Sequence record: NC_023688.1
Length of the DNA: 64,000 nt
Reading direction: 5' to 3' (one strand)
A model generated the notes under the pieces. The model saw nothing but the letters and a program-made list of their open reading frames with translations. It did not search any database and was not told the origin of the DNA. Positions 7,619-41,250 of this stretch are shown here, piece after piece; positions within the stretch are counted from its first letter, which is position 1, and each line of letters begins with the position of its first letter. The translations under genes were made by a program, and so were the position numbers.

Positions 7619-8593
7619 TCACAGCAGATTACTCCTGTCACCATAGTTTACTTCTTCAACGTACATTTCGTAAAGGAAATTATCCCAGAACTCGGTATCC
7701 ACTTTTTCACGCATACCGTTTTTCTTGGCGATAACAATCTCTTTCTCGACGTCATTCATGAGCTGTTCGAGATACGGGTTAACTTCATCGACAAGACTAC
7801 GCTTTCCTAGCTTGATGTCAAGGATAAATTCGCGATGTTTCAGTGGGAATTTCAGATCACCAGTTCGATAGATCTCAAGCAGTTGCTCACCTCCGCGCAC
7901 GGCATGAGACAGTGCTTTCCAGTCAACACCGACCTCTTCTTTGGCTTTCTTAGCACGATCACCGTATTCTTCCCAGATCTTTGTGATCTGATGCTCAAAT
8001 TCAGTAAACTTGATGCCATAAAGATACTTGCGACCCAACACTTCATAGAATTGAACAACTTCACCGGTTCGACTAATTTCAGCACCCGGGAACGTGAATT
8101 CATCGGTAGGCAGTCGTCCAACGAAGCTGGACAGACGGTAGCCACGTTCGTCTTGTGGTACTGCTTTGACTACTGCCATAACTCGTTCCAGAGCGGCCAA
8201 TCGCGTACCTTTCACACCGTACTTTGTTGCTTGTTTGCGACAGTAACCCAAGAAAGCGTCCATCTTGGTAGTGTAGAACATCGAGCGTTTTTGATGAATG
8301 TAATCCCAATATTTCGTGGTTTCGATCAGTTGATTACTATGCAACATATCAATGCACATAGTTTCGCCTTTGCTTGCGAGTCGCAAGAACTGACGCAAGG
8401 ACATCATTTCGGTATCGATATCATCAACGGTATTTTTACCTTTACCGCCAGTCGATTCGTTGTAGACCTCACGTCCACCAAGAATGATTTCGCGAGCAGT
8501 AGGGATAAAGATCCCTTTATAATCTCGGTCGGATGTTGGCGTACTCAGCCCATACAAATGCGAGCCGAACACGGTTTTCATTAGAGTTTTCAT
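7619..8593 (-). CDS. DNA polymerase beta-superfamily nucleotidyltransferase (RlaP-like)
   Basis: FGSHLYGLSTPTSDRDYKGIF is the GS..(Y)G..DxD signature; C-terminal WKALSHAVR...G.L helices. Confidence 0.8.
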   Translation of the reverse strand: MKTLMKTVFGSHLYGLSTPTSDRDYKGIFIPTAREIILGGREVYNESTGGKGKNTVDDIDTEMMSLRQFLRLASKGETMCIDMLHSNQLIETTKYWDYIHQKRSMFYTTKMDAFLGYCRKQATKYGVKGTRLAALERVMAVVKAVPQDERGYRLSSFVGRLPTDEFTFPGAEISRTGEVVQFYEVLGRKYLYGIKFTEFEHQITKIWEEYGDRAKKAKEEVGVDWKALSHAVRGGEQLLEIYRTGDLKFPLKHREFILDIKLGKRSLVDEVNPYLEQLMNDVEKEIVIAKKNGMREKVDTEFWDNFLYEMYVEEVNYGDRSNLL

Positions 8594-21773: not shown

Positions 21774-21893
21774 TGGCGGGGAAGACGGGACTCGAACCCG
21801 CGACCAATAGTTTAATTTGCGTTGGCTTGCTGTAAAGAATCTTCTCAGATTCCGCTTTTTGCGTCTACTGCTCTACCACTGAGCTACTTCCCC
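21774..21893 (-). ncRNA. tRNA-like RNA 1: acceptor, D and T arms, CCA end; anticodon arm replaced by hairpin + UUUACAGCAA module
   Basis: GGGGAAG/CTTCCCC-G-CCA; GCTC AGTGGTA GAGC; GCGGG TTCGAGT CCCGT; insert GAATCT-GAGA-AGATTC-TTTACAGCAA. Confidence 0.75.
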
Positions 21894-22038: not shown

Positions 22039-22167
22039 TTGTTGTCGCGATGTTGGATTCGAACCAACGACGTTTCTCGATGTGCCCACACTATAACGGA
22101 TTCGAACCGTACTCGATACTTCTTTGCGATCAAAGGTGTTCTCCCACTGAACTAATCGCGACAACAA
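22039..22167 (-). ncRNA. tRNA-like RNA 3 with two T-loops
   Basis: 13-bp terminal helix TTGTTGTCGCGAT/ATCGCGACAACAA; D arm GTTC AGTGGGA GAAC; inner ACGG TTCGAAT CCGT and outer GTTGG TTCGAAT CCAAC. Confidence 0.7.
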
Positions 22168-24368: not shown

Positions 24369-25811
24369 TTAGAAATCAATACCGACGTATCGGTCGCTCA
24401 TGATCTTGTCAAGCATGATTTGCATCGGGTTAAACTCTTTTGCACTCAGGATTGTCTCCATGATTGCAGGACTAAAACCAGATACCAACGCAGTGCCTTG
24501 ATCGTCTTTGGTCACCGGATTGTTAGTCGGGCGCGGGCAAAGATTCCAGAACACAAGTTTCGGCATTTCGTAACCAGCATCGCGGTAAGTCTGACGAATC
24601 ACCTCAAAGTTGGTACGTTCGCGGTCACGCATACGATAGTATCCGCTATAACCGCCGTCTGCAACGTTGAATTCCATGTCAGACAATACAACCATCATAG
24701 ACGGCATATCAGACTGCGGAACTCGATGTTTCACGGCACGATCAAGAATGATCTTGAATGCACCAGCGAAGTTGGTAGAACCACCCCACGGAGCGCGTCC
24801 CAGATGATTCACCATGCTTTGCAGATCGTCGCCTTTCGCTTTGATGTTGTAGAACTGAGGATTATCATCGAAGGTAATCACTTCGTTCTTGAACACACCA
24901 CCAGAGCGTTCACCGATATACAGACCCAGAGAGATCGCGATATCCATAGCAGACAGACCAGCGACGGCAGTCGGGGTGCTCATAGAGCCAGAAACGTCAA
25001 CCATTGCGATTACGTTTTCAGTAGAGCCAGCCATCCAGTCGCGTTGTGCTTTCCATTGTGCATCAGCAGCAACAGAAGAACCGGTACGCAATGATTTGAT
25101 CATGTCATACGGGTACACAGCACCAGCGTTGATCTTAGCTTCGCCCTTTTTCAGAGACTCAAGATAAGCAACATAACGCTCATTCGCATTTTTCAGGAAT
25201 GCTTTCTGATATCGGGCAGATGCAACAGACGGCAGTTTACCGAAATCAATTCCATCCCACTGACGAGCACACATTTTTTGTTCAACGGTGTTCGACATAC
25301 GGACGATTGTCTGACGATACTCTTTAGCAGTCATACGCATAGCTTTGGCCAGAATACCAGCTTCTTTGCCTTTGCGAGGAGCCCACTTAGCAGCAAGACC
25401 GTTCTGTTTGATCAGAATCGCGTCCACCATGATAGCGACCGCAGCATCTTCGATTGGAGTACCAATCATTGAAACAACGTCCTTATAACGACCGATTTCC
25501 GGTGTGTTCATCAGAACGACGGTAGCGTCAACTTGATGGCGATGTGCCAGCAGTTTCAGCAGACGAATGAACTGTTCACGCTCACCAGCACCACCGCGAA
25601 TATCGCGAGCCCATTGCAGAATACGAACTGCCCAATCCGGAGATTCGGTGTAAGCTTCCACAAACATGGAACTCAGATCTTTACCGCGAGCGGAACCGAT
25701 TTGAGAAAACAGATTCAGACACTTATCACCAGTGGTATAGTTAGTAACTGCACCGTTCGCGGTACGTGCCAGTGCTTGCGCTTGAGTCATTGCATTCATA
25801 AAATTAGACAA
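24369..25811 (-). CDS. DUF2828-type protein (TROVE/Ro60-like helical domain + vWA)
   Basis: RTANGAVT...LNLF, WARDIRGGAGERE, AAKWAPR and LPSVA motifs; MIDAS VDVSGSM and VLSDMEF; TTG start with GAGG site. Confidence 0.85.
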   Translation of the reverse strand: MSNFMNAMTQAQALARTANGAVTNYTTGDKCLNLFSQIGSARGKDLSSMFVEAYTESPDWAVRILQWARDIRGGAGEREQFIRLLKLLAHRHQVDATVVLMNTPEIGRYKDVVSMIGTPIEDAAVAIMVDAILIKQNGLAAKWAPRKGKEAGILAKAMRMTAKEYRQTIVRMSNTVEQKMCARQWDGIDFGKLPSVASARYQKAFLKNANERYVAYLESLKKGEAKINAGAVYPYDMIKSLRTGSSVAADAQWKAQRDWMAGSTENVIAMVDVSGSMSTPTAVAGLSAMDIAISLGLYIGERSGGVFKNEVITFDDNPQFYNIKAKGDDLQSMVNHLGRAPWGGSTNFAGAFKIILDRAVKHRVPQSDMPSMMVVLSDMEFNVADGGYSGYYRMRDRERTNFEVIRQTYRDAGYEMPKLVFWNLCPRPTNNPVTKDDQGTALVSGFSPAIMETILSAKEFNPMQIMLDKIMSDRYVGIDF

Positions 25812-29928: not shown

Positions 29929-30692
29929 TGGCCCCGGTGGGAATCGAACCCACAACGAGCGGTTATTCTTTTAAGAACTCGATTATGGATTTTCCATTCT
30001 CCAATTCTTTAATTTGTGAACTTTTAAGGACGATAAGGTTTTTAACGGACTTCCACTTACAACGATCTCGTTCACGCTCATAACCTTTAACCTCTATGTA
30101 AAGATCCATAGACGGTAGATAAAAGTCCGGAAAATATAGATGTTCTCCGTTTTCCCAGCTATAAACGAAAGGAGTAATCTCGTTAGTGTATTCTATGTTA
30201 GCAGAACTTAGGCATTTTGCAACCAATAGTTCCCATTTCCCTTTAAATGTTTGTCCTTCAAACGCATACATCTTAACGCGACCAGATACGTTGTTTTGCT
30301 GTAAGAATCTGGGTTGTTTTTAACAACTTCCTTCATGACTTTCGAAAATTTAATTCTTTGTTCGTCCGTCCAAATGGTCTCATTCATACTCTTTGCGGCA
30401 TCGGATAACTTTTTCTAGTCTCTTCCGAAATGACAGGTTTATCCAAACCAAGTCTGGTCGCTTTTGTGTATTGGTTTGTGCCTTTACATCCGAGTTTCGA
30501 TGGAACGTGAAACTTTATTTTATTTTGGATTTTTGGAACAACGAACTTCGTGTTGTCTAAGTGAATTTTGTATTCTTACAGATTTTGTCGCAGTATGCGC
30601 AGTTCATTAGATTATCTCCTAGATTGTGTTATATCACTATTTATCTAAGAGATTGTGTGAGCCGCTTGCTTGAACCCTCTAGCTACGGGGCC
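29929..30692 (-). tRNA. tRNA-Ile2-like (CAU), split in the anticodon by a 692-nt insert
   Basis: 5' half 30692-30658 GGCCCCGTAGCTAGAGGGTTCAAGCAAGCGGCTCA joined to 3' half 29965-29929 TAACCGCTCGTTGTGGGTTCGATTCCCACCGGGGCCA gives a canonical cloverleaf. The GGCCCC acceptor resembles Ile2. Confidence 0.8.
29963..30606 (-). mobile_element. Homing endonuclease-like gene (Zn finger + NUMOD3-like + PD-(D/E)xK), frameshifted in its 5' half
   Basis: Intact C-terminal ORF 30271-29963 with PDFYLP...IEVKG. The upstream part reads MNCAYCDKICK..SLRQHEVRC...SEETRKKLSDAAK...YSKNNVSGRVK once four single-A indels are corrected. Confidence 0.75.
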
Positions 30693-30732
30693 TTGTTTAT
30701 AGGAACCATTATTACATAGTCCCTATTTGTTG

Positions 30733-31125
30733 TCAACCTTTAAGATTCAGTTTGTATCGAATAGAACTCATGAAACTCATGATGTCTTCCAACAGATTTA
30801 CCAGATCGAAATGACGTTTGGTTTCCAGATACTCATGCACCATAGTACACTCTTGTAGGAAATTGTCAATCAACATTTCAACTTCAACTTCCGCATGTGA
30901 CACAGAAAATGTCTGAGCATAACCGCGAGCAATAGAAGCCTCAGCAAACGCATCTACCAACTCAGGTAAGCTTGTGTAATATTCGTTTAGTGCCATATGT
31001 CTGCTATAGACGGTCGTCACCAGATGATTGTGGTGAACGTAGGCCACGCTTTTCAACAGCTTGCAGATTAGATCACCAACGCTTGAGTTCGTATCGCCTT
31101 TGAAATCTTTAAATGAACTACTCAT
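30733..31125 (-). CDS. Ferritin/Dps-like four-helix protein (tentative)
   Basis: HHNHL...RHMALNEYY...LVDAFAE...DLVNLLEDI pattern. Confidence 0.55.
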   Translation of the reverse strand: MSSSFKDFKGDTNSSVGDLICKLLKSVAYVHHNHLVTTVYSRHMALNEYYTSLPELVDAFAEASIARGYAQTFSVSHAEVEVEMLIDNFLQECTMVHEYLETKRHFDLVNLLEDIMSFMSSIRYKLNLKG

Positions 31126-31172
31126 TGTATTCTCCTAATGAAAAAGGGAGCCGAAGCTCCCTTTTATTTATC

Positions 31173-31257
31173 TGGTGCGGATGGTCGGACTCGAACCGAC
31201 ATGCCCGGAGGCGCTAGATCCTAAATCTAGTGTGACTGCCAATTTCACCACATCCGC
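31173..31257 (-). tRNA. tRNA-Leu(UAG)
   Basis: CTAGA TT TAG GA TCTAG, long V arm, CCA. Confidence 0.95.
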
Positions 31258-31263
31258 ATTATT

Positions 31264-31351
31264 TGGAGGAGAAAGTGGGATTCGAACCCACGGACTCTTG
31301 CGGGCCTACGAATTAGCAATCCGCTACGTTCGGCCTCTCTGTCATTTCTCC
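31264..31351 (-). tRNA. tRNA-Ser(GCU)
   Basis: GCGGA TT GCT AA TTCGT, long V arm, CCA. Confidence 0.9.
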
Positions 31352-31707
31352 ATGTTCTTTAATGTATTCGGCAGCTCGTTTAATCTGTTCCCATTGAGAA
31401 TCAGTAACACACTGACCGGATAACACGAACGAGGCTCTTACGTTTTCCTCGATCTCTTGTTTTAAGCTTTGCAATAGTGAGTTCCTCTTCGAACAAAACC
31501 GCCAAAGTCTTTTTGTCCAATGCAATGAACACCGCGACTAACTTTGATAAGTCCAAGTTTTAACAGCTTTTCAATCTGTTGATTGGTACACTTAGCATCA
31601 CCTTGAGTAGTAGCGAAACCGTATGAATCAGCTTTATCAGCGAAACGGGATGCCAGCTCAAGATCTTGTTTTGTTGCTTTCATGATATAACTCTCTATTG
31701 TTTGATT

Positions 31708-31799
31708 TGGCGGAAGCGATCCGATTCGAACGGATGGACGGGGTTAACCGCCGACACTTTTCAAGAGTGTTGCAATAAGCCGGACTCTGCCACGCTTCC
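31708..31799 (-). tRNA. tRNA-Ser(UGA)
   Basis: ACACT CT TGA AA AGTGT, long V arm, G73-CCA. Confidence 0.95.
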
Positions 31800-31940
31800 A
31801 AATTCTTCGACACGGCTTTATGTCGTCGTGATTCTTGATCATTACGATCTGGCTACACACGCGCATCACCTTCCCGTTTGATAATTTAACGAGCTACGGG
31901 AATCATAGCAGCTCATTTAGCCTTTAGCAAGCTAAAAATG

Positions 31941-32013
31941 CGGGGGTAACTGGGCTCGAACCAGTGCATGACGGAATCAAAGTCCGTTGCCTTACCAACT
32001 TGGCTATACCCCT
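31941..32013 (-). tRNA. tRNA-Gln(UUG)
   Basis: ACGGA CT TTG AT TCCGT; no encoded CCA. Confidence 0.92.
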
Positions 32014-32126
32014 ATAAACTGGGACGAATATGAACGTTTAACGTGGGTCATCGTCTTATCGTTTCGGTAACTTAATCCTACTTTGTGTAACCCCACATCA
32101 TTCAACGCAACGCTGAATCAATTTTG

Positions 32127-32200
32127 TCCGTCATATAGGATTTGAACCTATGACCCTCTGATCCCAAACCAGATGCGCTACCGGACTGCGCTAATGACGG
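32127..32200 (-). tRNA. tRNA-Pro(UGG)
   Basis: TCTGG TT TGG GA TCAGA; 3' end CAA. Confidence 0.92.
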
Positions 32201-32214
32201 AGTATTCTTTATAA

Positions 32215-32321
32215 TAGGACGCTAAGGTAGAGAATCGAACTCTACATGAAATCAATACCGACGGGGCAATCTATATCCCGACTTTCGAGAAGCTATCTCA
32301 TTGCACTTAAAAGCATTAGCG
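32215..32321 (-). ncRNA. tRNA-like RNA retaining only an acceptor-like stem and T arm
   Basis: CGCTAA/TTAGCG terminal stem, GTAGAG TTCGATT CTCTAC T arm, about 70 nt non-tRNA interior. Confidence 0.55.
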
Positions 32322-32346
32322 ATTTCACCTTTCAAAGCGATTAAAC

Positions 32347-32423
32347 TGGTGCATCGGACTGGACTTGAACCAGTGACCAGCGGATTTTCAATCCGCCACT
32401 CTACCATACTGAGTTACCGATGC
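32347..32423 (-). tRNA. tRNA-Phe(GAA)
   Basis: GCGGA TT GAA AA TCCGC, CCA. Confidence 0.95.
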
Positions 32424-32430
32424 AAAATTT

Positions 32431-32507
32431 TGGGGTGGCGGACGGGCTTCGAACCCGTGACTATCAGGATCACAACCTGAAGTTCTACCAAACTGAACTA
32501 CCGCCAC
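32431..32507 (-). tRNA. tRNA-His(GUG)
   Basis: TCAGG TT GTG AT CCTGA, C73-CCA. Confidence 0.95.
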
Positions 32508-32588
32508 ATAAATGATCACTCGAAAGAAATCATTTATGTAACGAGTTACATACCAGATGCTACAAACGGGGCATCTGGATCCCTCTTA

Positions 32589-32673
32589 TGGTGCTCGGCA
32601 CAAGATTCGAACTTGCGATGCCTTTCGGTCTGGATTACAAAACCAGTGCATTCAACCACTCTGCCAACCGAGC
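32589..32673 (-). tRNA. tRNA-Thr(UGU) with an atypical long variable arm
   Basis: CTGGT TT TGT AA TCCAG; V arm ACCGAAAGGCATC; CCA. Confidence 0.8.
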
Positions 32674-32682
32674 GTTTTAAAT

Positions 32683-32774
32683 TGGTGGATGCGGTAGGAT
32701 TCGAACCTACAACGTTTACCCTGTGGGGCCAGATTTACAGTCTGGTGCAATACCACCGTCATTGCAGCACATCC
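32683..32774 (-). tRNA. tRNA-Tyr(GUA)
   Basis: CCAGA CT GTA AA TCTGG, long V arm, CCA. Confidence 0.95.
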
Positions 32775-32799
32775 ATTATTCTTTATTTAGTACGCTAAG

Positions 32800-32873
32800 A
32801 AGCGAGTACCTGATTCGAACAGGTGATCTCTGGGATATGAGCCCAGCGAGGACGGCCTCTCCTCCAACTCGCA
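32800..32873 (-). tRNA. Initiator-type tRNA-fMet(CAU)
   Basis: CTGGG CT CAT AT CCCAG (three G-C pairs); unpaired 1:72; no CCA. Confidence 0.85.
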
Positions 32874-32893
32874 TCTTAGCGCACTAATCAATT

Positions 32894-32969
32894 TGGTTCT
32901 CCGTATGGAATTCGAATCCATGTTACCGCCGTGAAAGGGCAGTGTCCTAGTCCACTAGACGAACGGAGA
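32894..32969 (-). tRNA. tRNA-Glu(UUC)
   Basis: CTGCC CT TTC AC GGCGG, CCA. Confidence 0.93.
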
Positions 32970-33248
32970 TCTGTCAGTAAGCGAAACTAAACAATCGTCT
33001 TTGTTTTGCTTTTAAGTCTTCTTCGACAACAGAGACATTATCGCATGTTTCCGCAGTAGAGTAAACATCTTTTTGTTTTTCTTTTTCAGCGGCTTCCGCT
33101 GCTTTCTTTCTAGCAAGTGGGCCAACGTTTTTCCACAAAGGCGCGTTGTACCATGCTGCACTACATTGATTGCCAGAGCCACGATTGGCGCGAGCGTCTA
33201 AATCATTACTCATTATAAACTCCTTTAATAGCAAGTCTATTTAGTACC

Positions 33249-33381
33249 AAATTTAAATGCACTGTCTAGATCCCCGCAGGTGGTTCCCACCTACTAGCCT
33301 TTGTTCGCACAAGCTTGCGGCTCTTAGCTACATACGAGGGCTTATCTCGTCACATTTAGGTTAGGGCAATGCACTTAAATT
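33249..33381 (-). ncRNA. Candidate structured ncRNA (about 130 nt)
   Basis: Terminal helix AAATTTAAGTGCA/TGCATTTAAATTT enclosing several hairpins; no ORF. Confidence 0.5.
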
Positions 33382-33455
33382 TGGTGGAGACGACGGGATT
33401 TCCGCCCGTATCTCAGATCCCAGTGACCTGCGATTATGAAGTTATCTACGTCCCC
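33382..33455 (-). ncRNA. Non-canonical cloverleaf with Ala identity (G3.U70, A73, CCA)
   Basis: GGGGACG/CGTCTCC-A-CCA; CAGGT CACTGGG ATCTG; T-like arm ACGGG CGGAAAT CCCGT; lacks U33, G18G19 and TTC. Confidence 0.65.
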
Positions 33456-33502
33456 GAGAAGGCTTAAACGTAACGAGTCAGAGGTTTAAGCGCGATTGAA
33501 TT

Positions 33503-33577
33503 TGGTGGTGCATAGTAGATTTGAACTACTGACCGACGGCGTATGAAACCGCAGCTCTACCACTGAGCTAATGCACC
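33503..33577 (-). tRNA. tRNA-Met(CAU), elongator type
   Basis: GCGGT TT CAT AC GCCGT, CCA. Confidence 0.88.
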
Positions 33578-33769
33578 AGACGGTATCAAGAGTCGATACC
33601 GAGGCAATAATATTGATTGAACTTATACTACCGCTATATAGGCCGCAGTATAAGAAGCGCGTTGGTGTCAATAGTAACGTTTAAGTTATTCGCCACACAC
33701 AACAATCACCGCTTTTTATAGCCTATCGCCACGCAATAAGTATATAGCCTATTGCTTGACTCGACTATT

Positions 33770-33845
33770 TGGTCCGCCGTGGTGGGTATGATCCACCAAC
33801 CTATCGGTTAAAAGCCGATTGCTCTACCAGTTGAGCTAACGGCGG
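33770..33845 (-). tRNA. tRNA-Lys(UUU) with atypical T loop
   Basis: ATCGG CT TTT AA CCGAT; T loop ATCATAC; CCA. Confidence 0.9.
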
Positions 33846-33853
33846 TTTGTTCT

Positions 33854-33924
33854 CAGGGGCGGTAGGAGTCGAACCCACCTCAACGGATTTGGAATCCGCC
33901 GCATAACCGATTTGCTACGCCCCT
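33854..33924 (-). tRNA. tRNA-Trp(CCA)
   Basis: GCGGA TT CCA AA TCCGT; no encoded CCA end. Confidence 0.9.
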
Positions 33925-34740
33925 ATATTCTTACCAGCTATCAAAATCCGTAATAGGAACGCTCTTTGCTCCATCTTTGACAGCTTTAGCACTAACTACA
34001 GTACCGATTGAGCCGCTTTGATATTCAACATCAATCAAGTTCGTTTCGTGCATCTGCATGAGTTCCATCATACGCTGAATCTCAAGCTTTGTAAACCTTA
34101 CTTTATTCATTTTTCACCTACAGAATAGGAGCTTCGATTGTGACATCAAGAACGGAATAATACGTGCCGTAATCCGAACTTTTATCGTTGTAATGTGCGC
34201 GAACTTTACAATCGGCATCATCCACATCTTCCGCTTCTACCAACTTAATGGTATCGAATGACTTAGATGATCCCATGTATTCGCTTTTCATATAACGTAT
34301 CTTAGCAAGAAACAACATCGGTGTCAACCCTTAGCGTATAGATTTTCGAAGTATGTTCAGACATAGGCTGAACACCGCAAATTTCATCAGCAATCAGCTT
34401 TGGAGCGAGTCTAGGACTAACAGAAAGTCTATTGAAGATCACTTGATTTCCTTTATCCCAATACTGTTGTCTTTTAATCGCCGAAATCTGCTTAGACTTG
34501 ATTTCCGTCTCTTCTGCTTTCAGAAGTTCGAATTCCAAATCATCGCTATAGACAACACCATACGCGATTACGCTATCAAAGTCAATAGGACATTCAGGCG
34601 TTTCTGTATATCTAATGATCTGCCTCAGTGTTCGAACATCATCTTGAAACCAACCGCAGTTGATAAAGCAGTGTCCAACACAATCGCCGTTCTTCATGAA
34701 CAGCGCCCAACTAGGTGCGCTCATAACTTATTTCTCAATT

Positions 34741-34815
34741 TGGAGCACAGGATCTGGATCGAACAGACGATAAAGTGATTTGCAATCACTTGCCTTACCT
34801 CTTGGCTACCTGCGC
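34741..34815 (-). tRNA. tRNA-Cys(GCA)
   Basis: AGTGA TT GCA AA TCACT, U73-CCA. Confidence 0.95.
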
Positions 34816-34824
34816 ATGTTAAAT

Positions 34825-34898
34825 TGGAGCCTCATTCGGGAATCGAACCCGACACTACGACTTGGAAGGACGGTATGTGACCACTACACCAATGAGGC
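34825..34898 (-). tRNA. tRNA-Gly(UCC)
   Basis: CT TCC AA loop (anticodon stem with two mismatches), U73-CCA. Confidence 0.85.
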
Positions 34899-34967
34899 AC
34901 TTCGAGTAGTCGAGCCGACTTATCCGTATTCTTTCAACGGTGAGCTGATAGCTACTCTAAAAATTTG

Positions 34968-35041
34968 TGGAGGTTAAGGGGCTCGAACCCTTGACCTACT
35001 GGTTGCAAACCAGTCGCTCGTTCCAACTGAGCTAAACCCCC
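34968..35041 (-). tRNA. tRNA-Ala(UGC)
   Basis: ACTGG TT TGC AA CCAGT; G3.U70. Confidence 0.93.
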
Positions 35042-35079
35042 AAATTCTAATAGATACTCGCAAGTATACATTAGAATAG

Positions 35080-35202
35080 GCACTTTATGCAAGTACCTAC
35101 GCAAGTCTTCGGATTCACATACGGGAGTGGTGACTAACCCACGTTACTTTTACCTGCTGTTCCCTCTCAGCCGCACATCCAACTACCGAAGTAAAGGAGT
35201 GC
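35080..35202 (-). ncRNA. Candidate structured ncRNA with CUGAGA and ACAGCAG loops
   Basis: GCAC..TTTA/TAAAGTGC, CTTCGG/CCGAAG, GGGA/TCCC and GTGG/CCAC stems; no ORF. Confidence 0.5.
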
Positions 35203-35316
35203 TATCTTTTAATAGTAGATTTGAAGTTTTGTATTGGTTGCAGAAGTGAATCCATGCATTTTCAAAGAACATTGAACTACTGTCGGGTAAGTTCATTTTT
35301 CCTACTAGGTAGAAAC

Positions 35317-35393
35317 TGGCAGTGACGACGGGGCTCGAACCCGCGCTCTCCGACGTGACAGGCCGGAATTTTAACCAACTAAACTACGTCACT
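35317..35393 (-). tRNA. tRNA-Asp(GUC)
   Basis: CCGGC CT GTC AC GTCGG, G73-CCA. Confidence 0.95.
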
Positions 35394-35399
35394 AGAAAC

Positions 35400-35474
35400 T
35401 GGTAGCCATGGGCAGGATTGAACTGCCGACCCCACCCTTATCAGGGGTGTGCTCTACCACTGAGCTACATGGCT
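35400..35474 (-). tRNA. tRNA-Ile(GAU)
   Basis: CACCC CT GAT AA GGGTG, CCA. Confidence 0.95.
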
Positions 35475-35481
35475 ATAAACT

Positions 35482-35588
35482 GGAAGACTTTTAACTGCCA
35501 CCTGGACTCTTGTGCTAGAGAGTTGAGGAATCGAACCTCACTGTTTTCTTGTTAATAGAAAAATTCGAATGGTTTGCTGAAATCTTCC
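35482..35588 (-). ncRNA. YrlA-like (Y RNA-like) permuted tRNA mimic with CAGCAA motif
   Basis: GGAAGATTT/AAAGTCTTCC terminal stem, then CAGCAA, T arm TGAGG TTCGATT CCTCA, closed acceptor-like ACTCT..AGAGT, and D-like loop CCAGGTGGCAG. Confidence 0.68.
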
Positions 35589-35611
35589 GTAGCACGGTAA
35601 ATTGTTATTTG

Positions 35612-35692
35612 CGGAGACGGCTGGACTCGAACCAGCATAGAGTTAACCTCACGGATTAACAGTCCGTCGCTCAACCTTTGAGCCACGTCTCC
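35612..35692 (-). tRNA. tRNA-Asn(GUU) with an atypical long variable arm
   Basis: ACGGA CT GTT AA TCCGT; V arm GAG-GTTAA-CTC; no CCA. Confidence 0.88.
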
Positions 35693-35718
35693 CAAATAAC
35701 AACTTGCAAATAAGAAAC

Positions 35719-35781
35719 AGAGTGAACTTTATAGGCTATTTCAAAATAATGGCTTTTTAAGTTGGTTGCTGAAATCACTCT
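35719..35781 (-). ncRNA. Short stem-CAGCAA RNA (element B)
   Basis: AGAGTGA-TTTCAGCAA...TCACTCT; own TTTACA-17-TATAGT promoter. Confidence 0.62.
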
Positions 35782-35793
35782 TTATCTTTGTTT

Positions 35794-36009
35794 ACTATAC
35801 ACTACTATTTAGTGATTGTAAAACAAAGACTTCTTAAATCTTTACTCTAACAGGCTCACTTTTGTTTTTCATCCGCAGAAAAGTTTTGATTGCTGAATGG
35901 AGCCTTATAAAGATTGTATCACGGTTTATCAACGCTGTAAACTATCTTTTATTTATGCTCTACTTTAAGAGCATGTGATAATGATAGCACAGTGTTTTAA
36001 TAGAGTAAA
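35794..36009 (-). promoter_or_regulatory. Three tandem sigma70-type promoters
   Basis: -35/-10 at 35822-17/35799-94 (TTTACA/TATAGT), 35941-36/35918-13 (TTTACA/TACAAT) and 36009-04/35986-81 (TTTACT/TATCAT); all have 17-bp spacers. Confidence 0.75.
35852..35905 (-). ncRNA. Short stem-CAGCAA RNA (element C)
   Basis: AGGCTC-CATTCAGCAA...GAGCCT; own TTTACA-17-TACAAT promoter. Confidence 0.62.
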
Positions 36010-36277
36010 CAATCTTTTTCTCGATATCCCCACATTGTTTCATGCTACTGCCGGTTGAGTCCGAAGACCGAATAAGGGTTCACTTCCACGTTAGGTTTAC
36101 GGCATACCGAGAAAAAGACAGTCCGCATCACAGTGTTAGCGCAAGGGGTTCCACTGTCACTAAGTTATTTAGTGTCTACTGTCAACCAGCTAGGTGGGCG
36201 CTGGTCCCGTCCATACGAGCATGATGCCACCAATACATGCTCGGAAAGATCTTACGGTTTCTCGAATCTCGAAATCT

Positions 36278-38627
36278 TTACTTGTCGTAATAATATGGCT
36301 TGCATTGACCTTCGAACTTGGTTTGACCACCGAAGAATCCAACGCGATTCTCGCCATATGTATCTTGTGCATTTTCTTCCGCGACTTTCAGCGCGGCTCT
36401 GCACTCTGCTTCGGTGTCGAACTTCTCAATTGCATGACTATGTGAGCCATAATTGGTACCAAAGTTAACGAACAACGAAGTAATCAACAAGAACTTAATC
36501 ATACTACACCTTTATTTAGTAGTAAACATTTAACGAGTTTCGCAGGAATACACTTCTTTCACGCGAGTTACAGAACGTTTGGTAACGTTAATGGAGCTAC
36601 CCTGATACCAGCGAGACTCAGAGTCCAACACTTTATCAACAATCGCCTCAGACTTAGGCAGAATCGCGGCAGTTTTCATTCTTCAATCTCCACAACTCGA
36701 TTTGTTTTTACAAGATGATCCCACAGCTTTTGATAAGGGATTGAATAATCTTCCTTTTCGTTGCAGCAAGAACAACCTTGTTCATAGTAAACGGTGATCC
36801 AGTTCATGTCAAGCTTGTATCCGTATCCGTAGAAGTGACGACTGCCATGATTTGGTTTGCCCAGCTCATAATTTACGACCTCTTCCAATGCGGTATCAAT
36901 ACCGTCGGAGTCGATAAAGTCTTCCGGTGCGTCTTGCTTACGCAAAGCGTCCATAAAGTCAAACAGATTATCAATTTTCATTTTCATTTCCTCATTAGCC
37001 ATAGTAATACGTTATCGCATTAATATGGCGGCTCTTTCGAGCCACCTCTTAGAAATCAGGTCATTCGTCTTTCACGATTAGACCTCCTTGAACTCCACGA
37101 TATTTGAAATCTCGTTGAACTCACCGTATTTCCTCATTGACGGAACAAGATTACCGTTCTCGTCATGAATCAGATCCGGGTTTTCTTTCCACTTATTAGC
37201 TGATACGTATTCTGACACAGCATCCGCATTCAAGTCAACAACTAATTTCGGATGAATTTTCAGCGGGTATTCGCGAGACTGATCATTCTCAGCACCAGCT
37301 ACCACGATTCGAGTCATCAGATCGGCGTGATAAAGATGATCATTGTCCTGACTGCCGTATTGCTGCGGGTTAAACTCGATGTTAAGTTCACACAACATGC
37401 TAACAAACTTACGAAGTCCGATATGCAGCTCTGCATTAGCGGCAGTGAATTTAATAACACGATTTGTCAAATTGTTTTTAGAGTAAGGACCCATTCCAAT
37501 GTTGATAACACTATCGTATTCCCAAGAGAAACCCATACTGAGATATTCATTACACAGATCATTTGTCAGTTCAGCACGAATGATTTCAGGCGCTTTCTCG
37601 ATTTCTTCCATTCTCAACTGTAATTCTTCTTTAGTCAAGCGTTTTTTATCTGGATCTCGAATTTCAAGCTTGGCGAAGACTTCACGAATCTTTTTGTGAG
37701 ACTCGATAGCGTAATCTTTGTTCCAAGATTGTTCCAATGTGCGGTCGTACTCCGCTACCATCAGATCATAGACTTTGCGCTTGATTACCATGAACATGAC
37801 TGGCGATTTCTTTGAACCCATAAACGAGGAAGCCGGTTGAATAAACAATTGTTCCCCGTGCATTAAGTCCTGATAAATCAGCTTGTTCGGATCAAACAGA
37901 TCATCAATGTTGATCTTGCGATCTTCGTCACAAACGATATGCGTCTTTACCATGTCTTGAAACGCTTGATATGCGTCGTTGTCTTCGATATCGAAGTTGC
38001 CATAGTCATCATAAGTCGCATACAGTGGAAGATGCATGGCAAGCTGGTATCGATCCCAGTTATAGCAACCCGGAGCGGCTGGAATTGTTTCGCCGTGACA
38101 GACAAGCGCGAGTAAAACAACCGGCTCACCACAAGTCACGATATGACGACTGACACCACAAATAGTATTGAAAGAACCCACGATATTTTCCCTTTGATAA
38201 GTTACAAAAAAGCCCCAGTTAAGGGGCTTCCAAATTGTTAAGCAATAGCTTCCAGAACAGCGTCGATGGATTCTTCAATCATCAGACGGGTCGGACGCTC
38301 GAACTCAGCGACGCGAATACTCAGCATAACTTCGCCTTGCACGTTTTCATGCAGACCGACGATCTTTTCGGCATTCACAACGAACTTGGCGACACCGCGA
38401 CTTTCGACCGGAGTAACAACAGTTCGTTTGATAAAGCAGTCTTTCAGCTTGAGTGCCAGATCTTCGAACTTCTCGGCAACTTGATAAACAGTCGGCAGTT
38501 GACCTTCAACTTTAACAGTGATCAGAGTCTGACCGCCGTGAGTTTTAACCAGACCAACTACTTTTTCGGAGTTGACTACGAAACGAGTGATGTTACCAGC
38601 AACCGGAGATACGATAAAACGAGACAT
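36278..38627 (-). other. Hypothetical ORFs (74-367 aa) within the tRNA region
   Basis: Minus-strand ORFs 36278-36502, 36676-37002, 37078-38181 and 38238-38627; the last has two tandem similar halves. Confidence 0.6.
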
Positions 38628-38894
38628 TATAATTCCTTAAACAGTTATAGAAAATACGTGTTGGCCATTCTGAATGATTCCAACGTTGTTGTCAACGAAA
38701 ACTTTAAAATTCATTTCCTTTGACATTTCGATGTGAGCGTTCGCAGCTTCTAGCGCGACTACACTCGGGTATTCATGTCTTTCACCAGCGAAGATACAGA
38801 TGCCGTTTAGACCGTAAACACGTCCACTAAAGCTTCCGTCTTCATCTTGGTCTAGTATACAGATCAATTTCAACGTGTCAATCTCTTTTTTGTT

Positions 38895-38979
38895 TGGTGC
38901 GGATAGTGGGACTCGAACCCACACGCCCGAAGACTTGGGATTTTAAATCCCCTGCGGCTACCGATTACGCCATATCCGC
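38895..38979 (-). tRNA. tRNA-Leu(UAA)
   Basis: GGGGA TT TAA AA TCCCA, long V arm, CCA. Confidence 0.93.
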
Positions 38980-38987
38980 GAAATTCG

Positions 38988-39069
38988 TGGGAGATACCGG
39001 ACTCGAACCGGTACGTCAGAAGACGGTAGATTTTGAATCCACTGCGGCTACCAATTACACCAATCTCCC
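38988..39069 (-). tRNA. tRNA-Leu(CAA)
   Basis: GTGGA TT CAA AA TCTAC, long V arm. Confidence 0.93.
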
Positions 39070-39161
39070 AAAATAATGCGCGTCCGGAACTCTCTTGTAT
39101 AAAATTGGACTTTATGAGTGTCAGTTCCGACGCGACTTTTTCTGTTGTGTAAAACACATTG

Positions 39162-39261
39162 TCGAGGCGACTGGATTCGAACCAGCGACCGAGTGCTTCT
39201 TATGTGCTCTCGTAAAAGTTCATAAGAAGGCACTTGCTCTATCCGTCTGAGCTACGCCCCG
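39162..39261 (-). tRNA. tRNA-Arg(UCU) with a 26-nt insert between positions 36 and 37
   Basis: AGTGC CT TCT [TATGAACTTTTACGAGAGCACATAAG] AA GCACT; acceptor, D and T arms canonical. Confidence 0.82.
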
Positions 39262-39286
39262 GCAATGTGTTCTTGAATGACTGGAA

Positions 39287-39784
39287 TCAAGGACTCCAGT
39301 CAAAATTTAAATCTTCTGTATACTCTTCAAGTATACGCAAGTTGTAATCGATTGTAAACGACTTTGGCAAAACAAAATCAGGGCCAACATCATAACTAGC
39401 GGTAATGTGTGGATGATAATCAGGATAATCATGAGTTGCCCCATGTTTCTCTCTGATCTCTTTGTGTCTAGCGCCAAACCAAGGGTCTGTGAGCTTTAGC
39501 ACAAGAGCACGTTTGCCGCTTTGTGTTTCGAAGATATCAGGAATCATGACACCTTGCAACGTTTTTTCCATAGTACCATACGCTTTGAAATCAGGCAAGT
39601 ATTTTCTGGAGTAAACCAACGTGGTGTGCATCTTATCATAGGGTACCAGATTAGGGATACCCATTTCGCGACATCTTCTAACAATAGCCATAGCAGTGCG
39701 AGGCTTGTAACGAACTGCTACATAAGTGCCTCGCGTTTCTTTTTGCTCCGTCGTCTCAGTGAATTCTGAAAACGACAGCATCAT
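39287..39784 (-). CDS. 57B: gp57B / Acb1-like 2H phosphoesterase
   Basis: Two HxT motifs (MHTTLVYSR, HPHITASY) and ATHDYPDY; synteny with 57A and 1. Confidence 0.9.
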   Translation of the reverse strand: MMLSFSEFTETTEQKETRGTYVAVRYKPRTAMAIVRRCREMGIPNLVPYDKMHTTLVYSRKYLPDFKAYGTMEKTLQGVMIPDIFETQSGKRALVLKLTDPWFGARHKEIREKHGATHDYPDYHPHITASYDVGPDFVLPKSFTIDYNLRILEEYTEDLNFDWSP

Positions 39785-39785
39785 A

Positions 39786-40019
39786 TTACTCGCTTACCAG
39801 CTCGCCGTCAACTGCTTTCGGAGCTTTCAGCTCTGCAATCTTAGCCAGATATGCTTCCGGTTGAGTTGCAGCTTCGCCTTCCAGTCCCAGCTCTTTAGCC
39901 AGTTGAGCGAAGAAACCTTGATAAAACTCAGATTCTTGAGTGCGAGCTTCTTGAGCATCAAACAGACGAACTTTCAGACTGTTCAGTTGTGCTTGCAGTT
40001 GTTGAACTTGTTCTTGCAT
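39786..40019 (-). CDS. 57A: gp57A tail-fibre chaperone
   Basis: LKVRLFDAQE coiled coil; position between 1 and 57B. Confidence 0.8.
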   Translation of the reverse strand: MQEQVQQLQAQLNSLKVRLFDAQEARTQESEFYQGFFAQLAKELGLEGEAATQPEAYLAKIAELKAPKAVDGELVSE

Positions 40020-40672
40020 TTCAATTCCTTATATGTAGTTAAGACTTTCTCACAAAATGACGTCAAATCGGCATCATTGTGAATGATTGGTTCATGTTCT
40101 AACGGATCTAATCCCCGTTCTGTAATGTGATTATCACACAGTTTTGTGTCGCGATAAACAAACATCATACTCCCGTTATTGCGTATGAACTCAATTTCAT
40201 GAGTCTGACGAACATCAGGAATAATTATATCTTTATTTAGTGACTCTTTCATTAGCGGTATAAGCCAGTAATTAGTCTTGACTTGTACCATGATATCGGT
40301 GCCTAGAGTCTGCATCATCTGACGAATGGTCCAAGGCTCGTTATAATCGAGTTTCTCCGCGATCTCACAAGCTTTATACCAGTCTTCGATTTCCATTCTG
40401 TTATATGACAGATGCAAATATCTGAGACAATCAAGCATCATACCGAAATCAATAGTAAACAAATCAGTGTCTCGATTGACATTAGTTTTTCCATCGAAAT
40501 CATCGAATGTAAGACCGATTGTTCTACCGATGCCAAAATTCAATGCGAGCTTAATAGGAAACGCCAGAGAATAAATCTCTGCATTGCCACCAATATCAAC
40601 TTCGTAATTTCTAACAAAACGAGCGGCAGTATCTTTGCCGCTCCGTTTCTTACCGTGTATTCCAAGAAGCAT
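39983..40672 (-). CDS. 1: dNMP kinase
   Basis: GIHGKKRSGKDTAA, RQMMQTLGTDI and IIPDVRQTHE motifs. Confidence 0.92.
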   Translation of the reverse strand: MLLGIHGKKRSGKDTAARFVRNYEVDIGGNAEIYSLAFPIKLALNFGIGRTIGLTFDDFDGKTNVNRDTDLFTIDFGMMLDCLRYLHLSYNRMEIEDWYKACEIAEKLDYNEPWTIRQMMQTLGTDIMVQVKTNYWLIPLMKESLNKDIIIPDVRQTHEIEFIRNNGSMMFVYRDTKLCDNHITERGLDPLEHEPIIHNDADLTSFCEKVLTTYKELKCKNKFNNCKHN

Positions 40673-40680
40673 TATAAGCC

Positions 40681-41250
40681 TTATGCGTGAGAATAAAATG
40701 GGTGTAATTTAGGTGCACTGCCGTTTGAGCCAGCGATGTACGGTCTAATTTCAATCCCGTCTTTCTCAATCACAAACGACTTATACATAAATGTTACAGG
40801 CAACACAATAGGACTATTACTCTCGTCCGTATAAGTAAATTCAACTTCACCCAAATTAGAGGGCCAAGCATCAATAAACTTGAACGTTAGTACGATCTTT
40901 TTCTTTGAGTTGTCTAAAACGTGCAACAACAGAGTTCGAGGAACTGTTCCATCAATCTGTGCTGTGCTGTTCATCTTTGCATAGTCTACTACAGAAAGCA
41001 TCCATTTGTAAACTTCCACATATGCGGATAGATTCTCGTCCATGAGCACTCTAATATTCAGCGGCTCAAAGTCAACGGCAGTTCCGGGTATTTTACCGAC
41101 TGTCATTGGGTTAACTGGAATTTCGATTGGGTTGATATTAATGCCGGGGATCGCGACCCCCTGCACTGCCATTTCAAACGCAATGGTACCACCAGAGTCT
41201 GGAATATCCAATCTAAAGTTCGTTACATGAGCTGGGTTACTGTGAATCAT
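40681..41250 (-). CDS. 3: Tail tube terminator / sheath stabiliser gp3
   Basis: NFRLDIPD...IPG...FEPLNIRVLMDENL..Y.E.YKWM...F.DAWP motifs. Confidence 0.88.
   Translation of the reverse strand: MIHSNPAHVTNFRLDIPDSGGTIAFEMAVQGVAIPGININPIEIPVNPMTVGKIPGTAVDFEPLNIRVLMDENLSAYVEVYKWMLSVVDYAKMNSTAQIDGTVPRTLLLHVLDNSKKKIVLTFKFIDAWPSNLGEVEFTYTDESNSPIVLPVTFMYKSFVIEKDGIEIRPYIAGSNGSAPKLHPFYSHA

Follow-up and report, generated by a model that had tools for sequence, protein, structure and literature searches.

The 64,000-nucleotide stretch of DNA considered here (sequence record NC_023688.1; called the window below, and in its numbering all positions are given unless a contig is named) carries on its minus strand a tRNA-Arg(UCU) gene that is interrupted in the anticodon loop by a hairpin-forming insert of 26 nucleotides (nt). 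Window positions 38000-41000 correspond to positions 100000-103000 of GU396103 (window position = GU396103 position minus 62000), with 100% identity across the 3 kb around the tRNA gene. That record belongs to Aeromonas phage PX29, a T4-like myovirus with a genome of 222 kb whose host is Aeromonas salmonicida. On the minus strand, 39162..39261 is covered over its full length by a match to the Rfam tRNA model RF00005 (52 bits, where the gathering score is 29; E 5e-9; model positions 1-71). The parts of the gene are listed below; the 5' exon was placed from the sequence read together with the junction in phage phiAS5, and the insert from the gap relative to the insert-less phiAS5 gene and from inserts at the same site in relatives.

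39162..39261, minus strand: interrupted tRNA-Arg(UCU), 100 nt; position 1 is 39261, discriminator A73 is 39162, CCA is not encoded
39225..39261, minus strand: 5' exon, tRNA positions 1-36, with the anticodon UCU at 39227..39225
39199..39224, minus strand: 26-nt insert, a putative mini-intron between U36 and A37
39162..39198, minus strand: 3' exon, A37 to A73

Read from the minus strand, the gene has an acceptor stem CGGGGCG/CGCCUCG, GGAUA in the loop of the D arm and a variable loop of the short class I kind (CGGUC), and taking the insert out yields an anticodon stem AGUGC/GCACU that closes the loop CUUCUAA. The identity set of E. coli tRNA-Arg comprises A20 in a GGAUA D-loop, C35 and a purine at position 73, and the corresponding elements are present here (D-loop AGACGGAUA with A20, C35, A73). 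A preliminary description of the locus, made from the letters of the sequence, had assigned a tRNA-Arg(UCU) with a 26-nt hairpin insert at position 36/37, the removal of which restores a canonical anticodon arm. The Rfam match and the phiAS5 junction show its coordinates and register to be right, and the stem and loop just given agree with the restored arm. Its further statement that this is the sole Arg tRNA of the window holds in the ARAGORN output, which shows no other, and can be widened, no other tRNA-Arg being annotated anywhere in the 222-kb PX29 genome.

The gene has been hard to recognize by the usual means. ARAGORN at default settings misses it; with introns allowed, the program reports a tRNA with a 26-nt insert in the wrong register, as Leu-AAG; and once the insert has been removed from the sequence, it returns tRNA-Arg(tct) for all 13 genes tested. 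In GenBank the gene is entered wrongly, as a two-piece join for "tRNA-Lys" in PX29 (PX29t025) and as a 105-nt "tRNA-Glu (UUC)" in phage Aeh1, where the insert has 28 nt; Arg-UCU does not figure in the published tRNA table of Aeh1 (PMC1524935). Its absence from the published tRNA tables of these phages is thus explained by default finders that miss the genes together with GenBank entries that say Lys or Glu, and the error carries over into codon-usage work on phage tRNA sets.

Taken by itself, the sequence is ambiguous as to the junction, since removal of 26 nt in differing registers gives AAG, UAG, UCG or UCU as the anticodon. Insert-less relatives fix it. In eight cultured Aeromonas phages the gene occupies one and the same site, with gene 57B on one side, two tRNA-Leu genes on the other and almost invariant flanks; seven of them carry an insert of 26-28 nt, and phiAS5 carries none. 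The phiAS5 gene reads CUUCU/AAGC across the junction and is an ordinary tRNA-Arg(UCU), with exons identical to those of PX29 at 67 of 74 positions. A second, independent pair consists of the metagenomic copy L022 (26-nt insert) and cyanophage S-TIM5, whose uninterrupted tRNA-Arg shares 97% identity with the 5' exon of L022; this pair gives the same U36/A37 junction. Because every insert starts with a pyrimidine and finishes with G, the junction cannot be shifted without loss of A37 or U36. The insert-less orthologues therefore put the insert at 36/37 and not at the canonical intron position 37/38. The survey of orthologous tRNAs that the preliminary description had proposed thus finds the insert fixed in position and variable in sequence among related phages; drift of the insert along a decaying tRNA body, the opposite pattern it had named, was looked for among the relatives and not seen. 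Comparisons of this kind, with those that follow, lead us to a probability of roughly 0.7 that the insert is excised from the RNA, which would leave a working tRNA-Arg(UCU).

The class was traced further by a pattern scan of IMG/VR (GCCUUCU, 20-34 nt, AGAAGC, 9-18 nt, GUUCGA). It returned 61 loci, 17 with an intact interrupted tRNA, namely PX29, Ah1 and Aeh1 together with 14 uncultured viral contigs of 6 to 170 kb, several of which hold tRNA clusters. The inserts of the uncultured contigs share no sequence with the Aeromonas inserts and have the same architecture; at least ten different insert sequences are found at the one position, with length and fold conserved, and the viral copies measure 24-29 nt in a search that permitted 22-36 nt. 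No cultured relatives were found of the metagenomic insert types L025 and L023, and matches to the L022 type were limited to Aeromonas copies and insert-less cyanophage genes. A looser viral scan that did not force the insert to end in AG gave no further hairpin of this class among the matches listed. Also among those matches were other Arg-UCU-like genes (L090/L121, L100, L129, L089) with inserts of 25-35 nt that start with A; not ending in AG, these inserts pair differently with the anticodon and may represent further insert classes. A stricter scan of one genome per species, covering 185,579 prokaryotic species, gave only three real cases. One is a 4-kb contig binned with a Clostridia genome and phage-like in look (tRNA cluster), another is a Woesearchaeota contig, and the remaining one comes from a metagenome-assembled genome:

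L232:284-384, minus strand: tRNA-Arg(UCU) with a 27-nt hairpin, Rfam 56.7 bits, in the 239-kb Chitinophagaceae contig CBDFGC010000016.1

The Chitinophagaceae gene stands alone and is followed by a terminator-like hairpin; on the one side seen, it lies by genes for a dehydrogenase, a topoisomerase IB and a cyclic nucleotide monophosphate (cNMP) regulator.

Selection on the tRNA was assessed by counting pairs in 14 distinct sequences (6 Aeromonas phage alleles and 8 metagenomic sequences) over the cloverleaf and the first five pairs of the helix that extends the anticodon arm into the insert. Bases are paired in 97.8% of cells, and 19 of the 26 pairs have changed on both sides, in 88 cells. None of 500 shuffles reached these values for pairing and double change, and sliding the partners by one to three columns lowers pairing to 34-49%. 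Every acceptor and D-stem pair covaries. So heavy a load of compensatory change in the tRNA bodies indicates that the tRNA genes are under selection. It also bears on the idea that the gene is a pseudogene, inactivated when a small, selfish and palindromic element of DNA inserted into its anticodon loop. That default tRNA finders reject the gene would suit such an element, as would the identical 26-nt insert found in two tRNA-Arg bodies that differ at many positions (L021:3420-3518 and L061:115-213 compared with L022:5741-5841), at the same locus adjoining tRNA-Leu(UAA) in related contigs. The latter finding gives a hint of movement from gene to gene, whether of the insert or of the anticodon arm. 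A pseudogene would not, however, be expected to keep its cloverleaf paired through 88 double changes in 14 sequences, and a landed palindrome accounts poorly for a single position that holds ten or more insert sequences of conserved length and fold, between conserved flanking processing signals. We consider this explanation highly improbable.

The constraint is of another kind around the anticodon. The pairs U33:A38, U34:A37, C35:G and U36:A never vary (13-14 of the 14 sequences), and the next pair outward, made by the first insert base and its partner, covaries. Invariance thus covers the seven anticodon-loop bases (32-38) and the 3' AG of the insert, which pairs with C35 and U36, and the remaining insert preserves pairing only. 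The boundary between constrained sequence and mere pairing falls at the proposed splice junctions, since the pairs on the anticodon side are invariant and the next one covaries. The AG had been written into the search patterns, and the Aeromonas set, found by synteny, is the sole unbiased test of it; all three insert types of that set (five distinct sequences) end in AG.

Invariance of the loop is what chiefly separates excision from the other reading offered in the preliminary description, an anticodon-masked decoy. According to this, the RNA is never spliced and serves as a tRNA mimic with a buried anticodon, acting as decoy or sponge for anticodon nucleases or tRNA-binding host factors, or else as a stable structural RNA. 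The anticodon loop is indeed fully paired in every copy, the same genome holds a second tRNA-shaped RNA with a non-decoding insert (21777-21893), and an uncultured phage (contig L054) has an ordinary, uninterrupted tRNA-Arg(UCU) at L054:4148-4220, in a cluster of 23 tRNAs, beside an insert-bearing copy of different body 7 kb away (L054:11459-11562). It has, moreover, been proposed that phage tRNAs counter tRNA-targeting defences (PMC10264068). Shape alone would nevertheless predict covariation at 33:38, 34:37, 35:G and 36:A, where invariant pairs and a perfect CUUCUAA loop are found, and the insert-less orthologues at the same site are ordinary tRNA-Arg(UCU) genes. A decoy would also leave PX29 without any tRNA-Arg despite heavy use of AGA, which ranks second in frequency among the Arg codons in 44 long open reading frames of the window (26% of Arg codons, 13 per 1000). 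AGA is rare in the high-GC Aeromonas hosts, and by established identity rules a paired C35 could not be read by arginyl-tRNA synthetase. The unspliced RNA is in our judgement improbable; of the two readings in the preliminary description, the comparative evidence favours the protein-spliced intron, the decoy leaving the invariance of loop 32-38 unexplained.

The predicted fold of the PX29 precursor contains the following elements, each taken from minimum free energy (MFE) folds.

39221..39228, minus strand: 5' strand of the extension helix (U33 U34 C35 U36 and the four first insert bases)
39197..39204, minus strand: 3' strand of the extension helix (the six last insert bases and A37 A38)
39207..39218, minus strand: distal insert stem-loop (CUUU, UACG loop, AGAG), beyond a 2x2 internal loop
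39263..39273, minus strand: leader strand of an 11-base-pair (bp) leader-trailer helix that extends the acceptor stem across a C/A73 mismatch
39151..39161, minus strand: trailer strand of the same helix

An 8-bp pairing UUCUUAUG/CAUAAGAA, a bulged C32 and the distal CUUU/AGAG stem with its UACG loop all appear in the MFE fold of the PX29 insert, in keeping with an early observation that the insert pairs with the anticodon and ends in a UACG-capped stem; the CUUU/AGAG stem is common to PX29 and the Ah1/Aeh1 insert type. For the 161-nt precursor region the folding energy is -63 kcal/mol (z = -6.6 relative to shuffles), and the extended anticodon arm has z = -3.8 against shuffled inserts. With the insert included, the anticodon arm is predicted to become a rod of about 19-20 bp. 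Sixteen genes were folded (inserts of 23-30 nt), and all 16 arms are alike in having a 5-bp anticodon stem, the bulged C32, a helix running from U33:A38 into the insert, a distal stem and a loop, usually with one mismatch or small internal loop within the extension helix. The number of stacked layers is 17-21 and in most arms 19-20; loops measure 3-8 nt, in most cases 3-4, and z-scores against shuffled inserts run from -2.5 to -6.3. The earlier remark that no bulge-helix-bulge is visible extends to the whole set: both junctions lie within continuous helix in 16 of 16 arms, and the sole bulge is the single C32. The insert was likewise described as far too small for a ribozyme; its 26 nt compare with about 100 nt or more for a group I core, and a search of positions 30000-41000 against Rfam gave no group I model even at E values up to 1, and no RNA family other than tRNA.

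The geometry of the junctions suggests how the insert might be removed. The 5' junction lies directly 3' of U36, the 3' junction directly 3' of the last insert base, which is the partner of C35. The exon product would then end in the pair U34:A37 with C35-U36 overhanging, and the two last bases of the hairpin product would overhang likewise; from the junction positions and the pairing register, therefore, 2-nt 3' overhangs are predicted on both products in every copy. Two pairs separate the cuts, C35:G and U36:A; both are formed in each of the 13 sequences with an insert, and one of the two is C-G. According to a transcriptome-wide map in E. coli, RNase III has a binding valley of about 22 bp and cleaves twice; the products have 3'-OH and 5'-phosphate ends and 2-nt 3' overhangs, and the two positions separating the cuts are paired, in most cases with at least one G-C pair (PMC6212723). 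RNase III is considered to fit because the stagger and the paired C35:G and U36:A match these rules, and because excision from 23S rRNA provides a precedent.

On this basis we propose the following course of events. Folding of the transcript would give a cloverleaf that bears two rods: the anticodon arm with its extension, and the 11-bp leader-trailer helix on the acceptor stem, which RNase III may open first. Host RNase III would bind the anticodon rod and cut both strands to give 2-nt 3' overhangs with 3'-OH and 5'-phosphate ends, releasing the hairpin with a 5' phosphate and leaving a tRNA nicked between U36-OH and pA37 in a loop of the normal 7 nt, its halves held together by the anticodon stem. 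The natural substrate of Rnl1 is a tRNA broken in the anticodon loop, and the tRNA-specific Rnl1 of the phage would seal the nick; host RNase P, 3' trimming and the CCA-adding enzyme would finish the ends. That the enzymes are host RNase III and phage Rnl1 is the assignment we tentatively prefer, although we give it somewhat less than an even chance.

The sealing half of this scheme can be matched to genes. The PX29 record annotates rnlA, rnlB, pseT and a tRNA nucleotidyltransferase (CCA-type). By Pfam, Rnl1 combines RNA_lig_T4_1 with the tRNA-specific T4_Rnl1_C (1e-40), Rnl2 is confirmed, and Pnkp consists of a HAD_PNKP phosphatase and a kinase domain. Rnl1, Rnl2 and Pnkp lie in the PX29 genome outside the window, where the preliminary description had suggested that candidate processing genes be sought. 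For the cutting half, a tblastn search with E. coli Rnc gave 14 phage records, none of them from Aeromonas phages, and in the absence of a phage RNase III the double-strand nuclease would have to be that of the host. No endonuclease of the EndA/TSEN family is annotated in PX29, where no search for EndA homologues was made. Among neighbour genes in the metagenomic loci (PHROGs, Pfam) nothing RNA-related recurs; DUF6878 is repeated in two related contigs, and there is one metallophosphoesterase.

It is possible, if on balance unlikely, that the insert is a true intron handled by other enzymes, a phage or host endonuclease leaving 2',3'-cyclic phosphate and 5'-OH ends and either the Pnkp and Rnl1 repair route or a host RtcB-type ligase restoring the chain. 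All evidence for excision applies equally to such a route. PX29 has Pnkp with its kinase and phosphatase domains, Rnl1, an RlaP-family nucleotidyltransferase and a Ro-like protein, and sealing of the RtcB type would suit the Chitinophagaceae chromosomal copy, as well as small phage contigs should these lack a ligase. What such a route would have to overcome is the position of both junctions inside continuous helix in every predicted fold, known metal-independent tRNA nucleases being ones that cut single-stranded loops. No candidate endonuclease was found beside the gene in PX29 or in five metagenomic loci, and the conserved rod length and 2-nt 3' stagger are left without explanation.

Excision by RNase III with sealing by Rnl1 has weaknesses of its own. 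The case for splicing comes from comparisons of DNA. At 17-21 layers, the rod falls a few pairs below the binding length of about 22 bp, and it contains a bulge as well as, in most arms, a mismatch or internal loop; the anticodon-arm helix might gain length by stacking on the D stem, and the folded tRNA attached to the rod could hinder RNase III. The stagger is less independent as evidence than it appears, since it follows in part from the pairing of the insert AG with C35 and U36, and that AG end was forced by the first search pattern outside the Aeromonas set. All examples may descend from one ancestor. The ligase is documented for PX29 and not for the uncultured carriers, and the genes seen beside the Chitinophagaceae copy are of ordinary chromosomal kinds and include no phage ligase; RtcB, the widespread bacterial ligase, needs other end chemistry. 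Lastly, outside the rRNA operons, none of the RNase III sites mapped in E. coli lies inside a tRNA (PMC6212723).

The surroundings of the gene in the Aeromonas phages show a conservation pattern of their own. Strands of the leader-trailer helix are near-invariant in all eight phages despite the differing tRNA body between them, and the 14-base trailer word at 39148-39161, which spans the trailer strand, occurs once in the window. The tRNA itself, with three or more diverged alleles, is less conserved than its flanks; between PX29 and AsFcp_4 the 3-kb region shows 95.5% identity, although tRNA body and insert both differ. The locus looks like one of cassette exchange or of diversifying selection on the tRNA. 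Two further features lie upstream, the first supported by the MFE fold and the eight-phage alignment, the second a pattern match only, with 10 of 12 consensus positions.

39280..39300, minus strand: conserved hairpin of 9 bp, located after the stop codon of 57B and before the tRNA leader
39330..39358, minus strand: sigma-70-like promoter match, TTTACA, 17-nt spacer, TATACT

The promoter match sits inside the 3' end of gene 57B, about 70 nt upstream of the tRNA. Gene 57B itself (39287-39784, minus strand) was considered as a linked splicing ligase and set aside, its Pfam match being to Acb1, a phosphodiesterase directed against the cyclic oligonucleotide-based antiphage signalling system (CBASS) (9e-36), with a 2H-ligase match below threshold. 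The RefSeq name "RNA ligase" that 57B bears in PX29, Aeh1, phiAS5 and Ah1 is misleading.

Other tRNA-shaped RNAs and RNA-related proteins occur in the window and in the contigs. The RNA at 21777-21893 (minus strand) is a second interrupted tRNA-shaped gene (Rfam tRNA, 54.3 bits), given in GenBank as a "tRNA-Leu" join and in Aeh1 as "tRNA-Val". It has canonical acceptor, D and T arms and about 45 extra nt between the anticodon-stem halves, which include a conserved, covarying hairpin GGAAUCU/AGAUUCU followed by UUUAC-GCAA, and the insert module recurs in a different tRNA body of the unrelated Aeromonas phage LAh_6. Since it offers no readable anticodon, it would seem to be a tRNA-like RNA and not an intron-bearing tRNA. 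The "tRNA-Ala(CGC)" that ARAGORN reports at 22087-22161 (minus strand) scores 22.3 bits in Rfam, below threshold, is "tRNA-OTHER" in RefSeq, and is doubtful or aberrant. Two protein genes belong in the same context:

24369-25799, minus strand: DUF2828/DUF7788/vWA protein, 476 aa, "RNA-binding" in RefSeq
7619-8593, minus strand: RlaP-family nucleotidyltransferase of RNA-repair systems

The 476-aa protein may be Ro/TROVE-like, and its gene is 2.5 kb from the tRNA-like RNA at 21777-21893. RlaP-family and Ro-like proteins have been discussed as parts of phage RNA-repair kits (PMC7824862), and the vWA protein and the RlaP nucleotidyltransferase suggest a Ro-type ribonucleoprotein with a tRNA-like partner RNA. 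In contigs L034 (995-4773) and L055, a tRNA-like run shares one acceptor stem and T arm and has aberrant anticodon regions, and ARAGORN calls its members Ile, Thr and "Pyl" with odd introns; these units look like repeated, degenerate tRNA-like elements adjoining the interrupted tRNA-Arg. The ARAGORN intron calls there (Val, Thr, "Pyl") were not used, the nature of the repeated elements being doubtful.

Among known systems, the protein-spliced introns of Archaea and Eukarya (EndA/TSEN, then RtcB or Trl1) offer the closest formal likeness, in a short, non-catalytic anticodon-loop insert that pairs with the anticodon, is fixed in position and free in sequence, and would need an endonuclease and a ligase. 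They differ in their position at 37/38 as compared with 36/37 in PX29, in their bulge-helix-bulge (two 3-nt bulges and a 4-bp helix), which is lacking here, and in their cyclic phosphate and 5'-OH ends, where 3'-OH and 5'-phosphate are predicted for the phage RNA. The host is a gammaproteobacterium, and we know of no splicing endonuclease in Bacteria. Group I introns of bacteria (cyanobacterial tRNA-Leu, tRNA-fMet, proteobacterial tRNA-Arg and others) likewise interrupt the anticodon loop. They require a catalytic core of about 100 nt or more (PMC4033280), however, and the PX29 insert is 26 nt long with no conserved core. Reviews describe bacterial tRNA genes as uniform and list self-splicing group I introns only (PMC4033280), which agrees with the preliminary description in its remark that a protein-spliced tRNA intron would be unusual for a bacterial host.

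For the cutting step that we propose, the closest parallel in bacteria is offered by the intervening sequences of 23S rRNA (Salmonella, Campylobacter, Rhodobacter, others), extra helices that emerge from a loop of a stable RNA and are excised by RNase III (PMC8708148). These are 100-200 nt long and leave the rRNA fragmented (PMC8708148), whereas a cut tRNA needs resealing in order to work. For the resealing, the counterpart is the restriction and repair of tRNA in T4, in which PrrC cuts tRNA-Lys and Pnkp and Rnl1 mend it; the same enzymes are present in PX29, and an anticodon-loop nick is again the substrate. The T4 break, located 5' of the wobble base, is damage inflicted by the host from which nothing is removed, whereas a programmed maturation that releases a hairpin is proposed here. 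Finally, the "enigmatic" introns of Lak megaphages (Devoto et al. 2019, PMC6784885) are similar in being non-group-I inserts in phage tRNAs found by comparison of genes with and without them. Their authors stated that phage tRNA introns had not been reported before (PMC6784885). The Lak example examined is about 90 nt long (93 nt, tRNA-Tyr), others are in tRNA-Thr, -Phe and -Gly, and one may encode a tRNA; the Lak phages are uncultured. The present class, in contrast, is a plain hairpin of 24-29 nt paired to the anticodon and is found in cultured phages. In the literature within coverage, which leaves out most subscription journals, we found neither an account of the short hairpin class nor one of a splicing role for RNase III or Rnl1, and the Lak introns were the sole non-group-I phage tRNA introns found.

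Collectively, the interrupted tRNA-Arg(UCU) is a real and conserved feature under selection, and it is best filed as a tRNA intron of the bacterial world with a new predicted splicing route. That phages and at least one bacterium use an undescribed pathway of tRNA splicing, in which host RNase III would excise an anticodon-masking hairpin of about 26 nt and a T4-type ligase would reseal the tRNA, is the full form of the proposal and one that we advance with more reserve, at odds clearly below even. The importance of the feature lies in making protein-dependent tRNA splicing in the bacterial world directly testable, since carrier phages can be cultivated. If the proposal is true, T4-type RNA ligase 1 would gain a routine substrate in tRNA maturation beyond the repair of damage, and excision by RNase III, known from rRNA, would be linked to a pathway of cutting and rejoining. 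It would then be relevant to the origin of protein-spliced tRNA introns, and for the phage itself the masked precursor might constitute a nuclease-proof store of an essential tRNA.

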